NCBI GenBank assembly: GCA_002269645.1
Contig: NIVC01000045.1
Location: forward strand, 186,001 to 250,000
Source: Macrostomum lignano
Lineage: Eukaryota
Length of the DNA stretch: 64,000 bases
Direction of reading: 5' to 3'
Part shown: in pieces, positions 17,621 through 20,600 of the stretch
Numbering within the stretch: position 1 is the first letter of the stretch
Layout of the letters: each line of letters opens with the position of its first letter
Made by a program: the position numbers and the translations under genes
Notes under the pieces: model-generated
What the model was told of the DNA's origin: nothing
The model's database searches: none
The model's input: only the letters and a program-made list of their open reading frames with translations

Positions 17621-17689
17621 AGGGATATTTTAAACGGGCAAGTTATTAAACAGCGAAGCAATATTATCAACACTGATTTCCATTTTCAG

Positions 17690-20600
17690 GCTCTGTTCCC
17701 AGCTTCGAATGATTCCGAGCTTGCCAAATCCTTAGCCGAACTGACTGCAAGTGTCAGCTCAGCTGCGACTGTTTATGACAGCTATCGGCCGGGTGACAAT
17801 GCCGCTGCCGCAACTACCGCATCATCGGAGTCTCTGCCTCATTCCTCTACAACAACTGCTGACAAAAAGCTAAAGAGAAAGTACAAGAAAGACAAGAAAA
17901 CTTCAAAAAAGAAGCATAAAAGTGTGAAACCAGAGCCAGATGACTCTGATAGCGAGTCCATTACTGTCAATGAGCAACCAGAAAGCTTTAGCATTGATCT
18001 AACTGGCAATGACAATATTAGAATTTATGGCTGCCTTGCCAAGCTGCATCAACCGCAACTTCCTGGCGGGCATTGGCGGCGTCAGTTTGCCTTGAAATTT
18101 GACGGCTCTTGTCAGAAATTGCCGCAGCAACAATCCGAAGATCAGAAGGAAAAATCCGCATCCAGCAAAGACATCATCAAAGCTTGGAGAAAGCGGCGCT
18201 ACTTTGCTAAACGGCATAGAAAACTTCTACCTTTGACTGAGACTTCTGTCCCGGACTCTGCCAATGCTCTTCCGCAGCTTGATGTCGCTGATTCATCGCA
18301 GAATTCCTCAGAAGAAACTCCTGACAGTCTGCTTCAATTAGCTGCTAAACAAGGTCGATTATTTCCGAATAATTCTCGGTTGGCAACTGAGCGGTGTCTG
18401 GCTATTGTTAAGCGAGGTCTGGAATTATCGCCAGCTCATTTAGGCCTTCGAATGCTCGAAGCTCGAGTCGCTCTGCCAGGCTGGGATCGAGCTGAGGCTC
18501 TGCGTCGCCTATCGGATTTGACATTCAAATATCCGAATTCCACATTAGCTTGGCTGTGTCGGTTGCAGCTGTTGCGGTCCAGTTTAGAATTGTACAATCG
18601 TTCTCAGCAGTTGAGACTCTATGCAGAGGCATTCGCCACACTGACAGCTATTGCTGATGGCCGCATGCTGTCGCACAGAGCTTTGCCTGACTGTTGGGAG
18701 CATCTGCTAGTTCTGTTTCTTGATTACTGCCTGTATCTGGAGCGTTGCGGTCTCATTGAACGAGCGATTGCCTCGTTTCAAGCCATCATCGAGTTTAACT
18801 TGTGCCGACCAACATCTGCAGCGACTGTAGACGAATTTGAAGCATTCTGGAGCTCTGGGGCGCCTCGGTTCGGCGACGTGTCCAGTCGCGGTTGGAGAGG
18901 CGACTGTGCCAGCAGTGCAACAGTTGATGCGGCTGATAGTGATGACGGGTGAGGAAGAGGTTCTTCGATACCTGGGCTGCTAGATCCTTCGACTGATTTT
19001 ACTAGCAGAGCATTTGACAGTACTGATAGCCAAAGCTAGCCAAGCTAGGTTATGGTCCTTAGTGGGCAGATGTGCAACCGACAGTTCAGCCGCAGCTATT
19101 GCGCGATGCATTTGAAGACTGTGTACAGCTGTTCAGTCCAAGGCCTTGGGTGGGGGAGTCGCCATACACCCTTAAGTACCCCAGCTAATGCTTGTAGACC
19201 TTTACAGCTGAGTGAACTGAAGCAATACAGAGTTAATCAAGTGTCCTGCTTAGGAACACAAATTGTTCCGATTGGGTCCAGAATCGAACCCCTGACTTCA
19301 GTCGTAAGCCCGACGCTCTAACCACTAGGCTAAAATCCCTATAGACACATTGCGATATCGCATGTTAACCTGGCATGGCTCTGTGTGAGCAGGACAGCCA
19401 CACGTTAGCGACAAACACAAATGACCTTAATTGAACTTTCATTTCAGCTACTTCCTAGCTGCTCAAGAGTCATGCGACGATGAAGAAAGGAAGCTGCTGC
19501 AGAATCATCTGGAAAACATTCGGTGCGAGGAAGATGAAGAAGACAAAAACCAGCCGCCACTTGCCGAGCTGATGCTCGAATTCGAACGGATTCGCTGTCA
19601 CTGGCTCTGGTATCCGTGCCGCAGGGAAAACGAGATTGAAGATCTCGACAGACTTGTAGCCTTTGACGATGTTCGAGCTTGTCTCATTCGGCTGCCAACT
19701 GAACTGACGCCTCATCTTGTGGCGCTGTTTCTCCTGTTCTTGAGATGTCCTCAGCTAGAGCTGGACCAGGATTGCTGCAGTCTGTTGCATCGGCTGCAGA
19801 CTGCTGTGGGGGATCAGCAGCTCCTGGCTTCCGTGCTGATGGGTGCTAGGTTTGTCTCCTTGACGTGCATTGCTCTCGCTTTGAGACTCATCTACCAGAC
19901 ACTCACCACAGCCTCAGCTAATCTACCAGACACTCACCCCAGCCTCAGCTAATCTACCAGACACTCACCCAGCTCATCTACTGGACACTCACCCCAGCTC
20001 TCCTACCAGACCCTCACCCCATCTCATCTACTAGACACTCACCCCAGCTCATCTACCAGACACTCACCCCAGCTCATCTACCAGACACTCACCCCAGCTC
20101 ATCTACCAGACACCCTCATCTCCCCTCAGATCCCGGATCCACTTCGGCGCCAACAGCGCCACCAGCGGCAGAGGCGAGCTTGGCGGATTTTATCGCGCCG
20201 AACCGGCGCCAAATTGGCGCGACCTTCAACTGTTCCGACTGCGTGTGTGCTGTCAAACCGCTACGGGTGGCAATTATTTCTCCGACTGTCTGAGCAGCCA
20301 CAGCAGAGAAATGTTTGCTCGATTGGCTGTAGCGGAGGCTGCCTCAATCGATCAGCAGTTGCTAAGGCGAGTAGCCAAATCCCTGCTGCGAAGTCGACCG
20401 GACTGGAGCGTCTGGGCCGCGTTCGCTGCCGCTGACGCGAATTCGAATAGCAGTCGACGGACTTTTGATGGCGTGCTCGAGGGGCTGAAGTTTCCCGGTC
20501 TGTGCGGTGGGCTGGTGAGGAGTTTGATAGTAACTTAGCTCAGCATAGTAACACCCCAGCAACCATTGTTACTCAGCAACGTCCTAGCAATAATATTTTC

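Follow-up and report, generated by a model that had tools for sequence, protein, structure and literature searches.

A probable spliced leader origin for the initiator AUG of NRDE2 in Macrostomum lignano, a free-living flatworm

The use of the AUG at the 3' end of a flatworm spliced leader (SL) as initiator was described by Cheng, Cohen, Ndegwa and Davis (2006, J Biol Chem 281:733), as cited in PMC9851317, PMC3510090 and PMC12582326. According to the summary given in PMC9851317, the SL AUG falls in frame for 28% of the Schistosoma mansoni transcripts that are trans-spliced, and over 40 cDNAs need it. In Echinococcus granulosus, 143 of 187 SL-bearing clusters counted by prediction as full-length with the SL ATG as start, and four of eight cDNAs with an in-frame SL ATG require it to match the conserved N-termini of their orthologues (PMC3510090). 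We describe here a gene that would belong with these cases, the NRDE2 gene in a stretch of 64,000 nucleotides of the M. lignano genome (assembly GCA_002269645.1, contig NIVC01000045.1, positions 186,001 to 250,000 of the forward strand). This whole stretch is called the window below, and positions are counted from its first letter.

All the flatworm SLs reported carry an ATG at their end (PMC12582326). That of M. lignano is a 35-mer, CGGTCTCTTACTGCGAAGACTCAATTTATTGCATG (PMC8629364), with one ATG only, which forms its last three bases. M. cliftonense and M. hystrix have SLs that show high conservation with it, and the final ATG has been marked there as the "translation start codon" (PMC10468722). 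The premise of the first-pass annotation of the window, that flatworm leaders end in an AUG able to serve as initiator, is thus borne out by the published leaders and by the earlier flatworm cases. Trans-splicing affects 30-39% of the M. lignano genes, with conserved genes enriched among them (PMC8629364, PMC5730564), and the top trans-acceptor motif of the species is [T/C]TNCAG (PMC8629364).

The coding sequence of NRDE2 opens at 17690, directly behind the acceptor ccattttcag|GCT, and reads GCT CTG TTC CCA GCT TCG (ALFPAS) in phase 0 (coordinates in Table 1). The end of the acceptor, TTTCAG, matches the trans-acceptor motif, and the pyrimidine tract in front of the AG at 17688-17689 (12 of 15 bases) is the best among all the AGs in 17600-17760. 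No ATG is found in the 24 codons between the upstream in-frame TGA and the exon, and the remaining two frames are also shut upstream of the acceptor, at 17674 and 17631. A string search found no ATGGT on the + strand over 15985-19052, so that the stretch from the stop of the upstream gene (16031-16033) to the acceptor offers no exon end of the form ATG|GT. The first-pass annotation had claimed that the open reading frame (ORF) starts with ALFPA directly after a strong acceptor, that no in-frame ATG lies between it and the stop at 17615, and that the 1.65 kb separating the upstream stop from the acceptor lacks an ATG|GT at which an exon could end; all of this held when the bases from 17675 through 17690 and onward, the 24 codons and the + strand were scanned. 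The first ATG in frame is codon 255, which has nine out-of-frame ATGs with short ORFs upstream of it, and a start there would cost the protein its LFP motif, its Ser/acidic and Lys-rich blocks and the start of its domain. Other routes to a start were tried and rejected: with an ATG split over the junction (AT|G) the shifted frame stays open for 9 codons and then meets a stop, use of the AG at 17701-17702 instead loses the frame and brings a stop after 11 codons, and a GC donor at about 16121 (ATG|GCAGAG) is a poor one.

Joined in silico to the exon at 17690, the SL gives ATG|GCT CTG TTC CCA GCT, which translates as MALFPASNDSELAK, in frame and with 1,099 further codons open behind it. We propose that the NRDE2 pre-mRNA is SL trans-spliced at the acceptor ending at 17689. 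The 35-nt SL, with AUG as its last bases, would be joined directly to GCU CUG UUC CCA, and the junction on the mature mRNA would read ...TTATTGCATG|GCTCTGTTCCCAGCTTCG. Translation of this mRNA (...UUGC AUG GCU CUG UUC CCA GCU) from the leader AUG would give MALFPAS..., an NRDE2 of 1,100 residues with the N-terminal peptide (M)ALFPASNDSELAK, probably Ac-ALFPASNDSELAK once the Met is removed. As no start codon would be present in the gene itself, the full-length protein would depend on trans-splicing. We infer the joining of the SL at 17690 and the use of its AUG from the genomic anatomy, the frame, the homology and the published SL, and we consider SL trans-splicing at 17689/17690 with translation from the leader AUG to be the best explanation, with a probability of roughly 0.75.

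Human NRDE2 (NP_060440.2, Q9H7Z3) begins with MALFPAFAG, and NP_060440.2 thereby confirms the MALFPAF start given for it in the first-pass annotation. We searched the first 80 residues of 105 full-length NRDE2 representatives starting with Met for the motif, defined as FP with a small residue behind it. It was present in 51 of the 105, and in 16 it stands directly after the Met (9 as MFP and 7 as M-x-LFP). The MFP starts include those of Opisthorchis viverrini, Schistosoma japonicum and Schistocephalus solidus (MFPAG, MFPCAS and MFPSAS). Judged from these N-termini, the LFP motif is a real hallmark of the NRDE2 family, at or near the start of the protein. By rough arithmetic with typical residue frequencies, the chance of finding LFP and a small residue at a fixed position is on the order of 1e-4, and on the sequence evidence the occurrence of the motif at the first codons after the acceptor is meaningful and not fortuitous. 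The place of the motif at the very first codon of the exon favours the joining of the SL, and the phase-0 start of the exon supports it too, because an exon spliced in cis would meet phase 0 in only 1 case in 3. The second codon of the exon, CTG (Leu) at 17693-17695, aligns with the start Met of the parasitic flatworms, with a difference of one base. By this alignment, what is specific to the NRDE2 case is that the parasitic flatworm orthologues are annotated with their start Met at the Leu codon of the window.

Several observations weigh against a leader-borne start. In about 30 of the 51 matching representatives the motif is set back from the start by 3-25 or more residues, and with such a variable position of LFP in the orthologues the Met need not sit directly before the Ala. 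The earlier statement that the SL at 17690 restores exactly MALFPA therefore stands as to the frame and as to the MALFPAS obtained in silico, and it loses force as to "exactly" because of the residues that these orthologues have before the motif. The context of the SL AUG, UUGC AUG G, has a pyrimidine at -3 and is mediocre by the Kozak rule. No SL RNA gene was found within the 64-kb window, and the SL sequence was taken from the literature. Neither word-indexed searches (with exon 1 and with exons 2-5) nor phmmer returned a Macrostomum NRDE2 protein, cDNA or orthologous locus; metagenome contigs, scanned for exact copies of the exon start and of the predicted SL-exon junction, gave 0 matches; and the name NRDE2 was not found in a text search of the supplements of four M. 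lignano papers. Some NCBI proteins of M. lignano are 5'-partial (P0171, P0176 and P0179), and we rejected them as support for the SL; they are truncated inside ANK repeats, not after acceptors, and are uninformative on this point.

The gene itself is a real five-exon orthologue of NRDE2. The model has canonical GT-AG borders and an open frame of 1,099 codons without interruption. Exon 1 alone matches the Pfam family NRDE-2 (PF08424, gathering cut-off 34 bits) with 100.5 bits (E=1.2e-28). The spliced model reaches 135.1 bits (E=3.7e-39), covering profile positions 41-322 of 323 with model residues 225-523, and this better match with the exons joined validates the junction of exons 1 and 2. A phmmer search of 1.84 billion representatives found 477 relatives at E<=0.001, with 23-52% identity; the named ones are the NRDE2 of human, of chimpanzee (Pan), of S. 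japonicum and of S. solidus, and the locally closest (47-48% identity) are from parasitic flatworms. When human or parasitic flatworm NRDE2 was used in tblastn, exons 1-2 alone aligned, the C-terminal half being too diverged. By eye, the C-terminal VEKDVRQRVLPDEILMLWE of exon 5 resembles the ELRxRxPLEE motif at the C-terminus of the family, and FSIDLTGNDNIRIYG resembles, by eye only, the Y.IDR...N..Y block of the flatworm and human proteins. With the N-terminal 299 residues as query, BLASTP gave an N-terminal alignment to human NRDE2 that is collinear, though not significant (E=19), so the argument for the N-terminus rests on a short motif and not on a long alignment. A sequence search of PDB, considered for the MTR4-binding region and the C-terminal HAT-like repeats of the family, gave no match.

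Within the NRDE2/Nrl1 family (human Q9H7Z3, Caenorhabditis elegans NRDE-2), the Macrostomum gene shares the PF08424 domain, the length of about 1,100 aa, an LFPA motif at the N-terminus with Ser/acidic and Lys-rich blocks behind it, and the ELRxRxP-like C-terminus. It differs from the family in being without a genomic start codon, and the WLxNxSF that follows LFPA in many NRDE2 orthologues is not evident in it. The protein had been called a nuclear RNAi factor, which fits the name of the C. elegans protein but not that of the human orthologue, which is named "nuclear exosome regulator".

Table 1. Positions in the window of the NRDE2 gene and of the features upstream of its first coding exon.
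Feature	Position	Strand	Remark
Spacer, presumed 3' untranslated region and outron	16034..17689	+	From the stop of the upstream RING-finger gene to the acceptor
GAGTC/GACTC-rich repeat element	17189..17620	.	13 pentamers in 432 bp
In-frame TGA	17615..17617	+	Closes the frame 72 nt upstream of exon 1
3' splice acceptor, proposed SL trans-splice site	17675..17689	+	gatttccattttcag
NRDE2 coding exon 1	17690..18948	+	Donor GG|gtgagg; codons 1-254 contain no ATG
First in-frame genomic ATG (codon 255)	18452..18454	+	Inside the NRDE-2 domain
NRDE2 exon 2	19448..19849	+	Pfam NRDE-2 match runs across the exon 1/2 junction
NRDE2 exon 3	20130..20514	+	
NRDE2 exon 4	21146..21511	+	
NRDE2 exon 5	21782..22669	+	Stop TAA at 22667-22669

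An ATG could also be supplied by an upstream exon spliced in cis, in the 1.65-kb spacer or further away, perhaps with a few extra codons. The 3-25 residues that precede the LFP motif in many NRDE2 orthologues would suit such an exon, and enumeration of every ATG open up to a GT in 16037-17689 yielded 13 phase-0 mini-exon candidates of the form ATG...|GT. Twelve of the 13, however, have poor donors with respect to the species consensus GT[G/A]AG (taken from PMC8629364). The only one with a near-consensus donor (GTGAAA), at 16864-16968, lies in surroundings of 27-35% G+C with two AATAAA signals downstream of it, and its translation is a hydrophobic peptide, MNFLYIFVRILLTCQFLCF..., which is unlike any NRDE2 N-terminus. 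ATG|GT itself occurs nowhere in the spacer. Moreover, an exon could be joined in any of three phases, and the phase 0 observed, with the motif at the first codon, is what the joining of the SL requires. We therefore regard an exon spliced in cis as unlikely. A defective copy must be considered as well: the protein might start at the ATG of codon 255, or the start might have been lost from this copy, as a paralogue in decay or through an artefact of the assembly. Duplicated genes are indeed numerous in M. lignano (PMC8629364), and the failure to find an annotated Macrostomum NRDE2 in the protein libraries searched would fit a gene of this kind. A decaying copy would hardly be expected, however, to keep an intact frame of 1,099 codons over five exons with canonical GT-AG borders, nor a Pfam match that improves once the exons are joined. 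The ATG of codon 255, for its part, lies inside the NRDE-2 domain and behind 9 out-of-frame ATGs, while the LFP motif and the lysine-rich block upstream of it stay open and are collinear with human NRDE2. Such an origin is very unlikely.

Still another start can be considered, in which the SL AUG plays no part and initiation occurs at the near-cognate CUG of codon 2, giving MFPAS..., the type of N-terminus seen in the parasitic flatworms. The ATG of neodermatan NRDE2 (O. viverrini, S. japonicum, S. solidus) aligns with this very CTG, and near-cognate initiation is on record for SL-bearing taxa (PMC9851317). Initiation at codons other than AUG is inefficient as a rule, though, and no sequence feature specifically favours the CUG, which has G at -3 and T at +4. 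The site is trans-acceptor-like and a third of the genes get the SL, and an SL AUG placed three bases upstream would be used first. A start at the CUG thus seems extremely unlikely to us.

The proposed SL trans-splicing at 17690 has much in common with the system of Cheng et al. (2006), namely an SL ending in AUG, an acceptor right before codon 2 and an SL AUG that is in frame. The argument, too, is the one made for the S. mansoni and E. granulosus cases, that the SL AUG is the sole route to the conserved N-terminus of the orthologues. The cases of Cheng et al. rest on SL-bearing cDNAs and in vivo translation, whereas the NRDE2 case is read from the genome. Macrostomum also differs from the parasitic flatworms in being a free-living macrostomorph, and no systematic list of SL-AUG-dependent genes was found for macrostomorphs in the literature searched. 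Another related class is that of the slORFs detected by slORFfinder (PMC9851317), which share with NRDE2 an ORF that exists only after the leader has been joined to the recipient mRNA, but which are identified by means of RNA-seq reads that contain the SL and of ribosome footprints, a basis different from the genomic one used here. With the SL trans-splicing and operons already described in M. lignano (Ustyantsev and Berezikov 2021, PMC8629364; Wudarski et al. 2017, PMC5730564), the locus has in common the acceptor motif and a conserved target gene, and the same-strand neighbours of NRDE2, with their repeat-filled spacers, would fall under the 1-kb repeat-adjusted operon threshold of PMC8629364. 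The SL ATG as start codon is not discussed in either of these two papers.

The genes FAM91, RING, NRDE2 and RRM of the window all lie on the + strand, and the spacers between them are made up mostly of tandem repeats and of the repeat element listed in Table 1. This layout is compatible with a polycistronic unit whose downstream genes would have to be trans-spliced. The spacer upstream of NRDE2 has a G+C content of 35%, as compared with 49% for exon 1, and carries AATAAA at 17026 and 17060. The GAGTC and GACTC pentamers, which average 1.3 per 500 bp over the window, are concentrated in the repeat element, which ends 70 bp before the acceptor; many of them are TGA(C/G)TC and so AP-1-like. Both ends of the element match a compact copy of about 85 bp (12218-12297) in an intron of the RING gene, and for this reason the element is more probably a non-autonomous repeat than an array belonging to a promoter. 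For the next + strand gene, which encodes the RRM protein, the acceptor abuts the gene's own ATG at 24421 (ttttccagtccag|ATGTCA, in 24400-24430). SL trans-splicing at this gene would give an in-frame AUG-AUG, which could be an intermediate stage before a genomic ATG becomes dispensable.

Tandem repeats are found on both sides of NRDE2 and inside it. In the flanking spacers there are two arrays, a 28/56-bp one (16189-16548) and a 21-bp one that extends over more than 600 bp (from 22851). Introns 2, 3 and 4 consist largely of tandem repeats (19887-20113, 20612-21024 and 21597-21774), built respectively from a 25/31-bp unit, from a 31-bp unit in 13 copies and from (CTA)59. On the minus strand of intron 1, at about 19262-19330, there is a tRNA-like remnant with a GGTTCGATTCTGG T-arm, which is probably a fragment of a short interspersed nuclear element; ARAGORN and Rfam made no call there, and nothing was found by Rfam over the whole window or by the tRNA scan of 15000-23000. 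Exon 4 (about 21385) and the beginning of exon 5 (about 21788) contain similar GGTTCGAGTC strings.

Further along, the window carries two tandem copies of a gene with ANK repeats and a Mab-21-like part, at 39946-44634 and 52283-58969. The M. lignano annotation has ANK and Mab-21-like as single fused genes (e.g. BOX15_Mlig009614g1). The near matches of the 558-aa ORF at 42958-44631 are M. lignano proteins only, with 83-90% identity, and three loci of the Mlig_3_7 assembly (GCA_002269645.1) align to the window with about 90% nucleotide identity, both within and between the ORFs. By these matches the DNA is that of M. lignano or of a species very close to it. The two copies share about 80-91% of their DNA letters with the Mlig_3_7 paralogues. 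As far as these comparisons of sequence go, ANK plus Mab-21-like is a rapidly expanding family. Exact look-ups of three ORF products of the window found none of them on record.

The mechanism is already established in flatworms, and NRDE2, as read here, is a further example of it, in a free-living macrostomorph. The gene appears to be unannotated in public sets: other Mlig_3_7 proteins are present in both protein libraries searched, and a Macrostomum NRDE2 was not found in them. The annotation pipeline of M. lignano (Mlig_3_7) trimmed the SL before ORF calling (PMC5730564), and one might speculate that this trimming may be the reason why NRDE2 is absent from the public protein sets of Macrostomum. 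Genes that take their start from the SL AUG would be miscalled as 5'-partial, called truncated or missed altogether when the leader is trimmed before ORF prediction. A genome-wide list of genes in which an acceptor is followed directly by codon 2 would improve the annotation of Macrostomum, and would show how often, outside the parasitic flatworms, the leader has taken over the start codon. We hold it to be slightly better than an even chance that the start codon of NRDE2 passed to the SL in the lineage of Macrostomum, that the synthesis of this nuclear RNA-surveillance factor then became obligately coupled to trans-splicing, and that annotation with SL trimming may systematically lose such genes. 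If this is true, the expression of NRDE2 would be strictly dependent on trans-splicing, as an expected consequence of a mechanism known since 2006.

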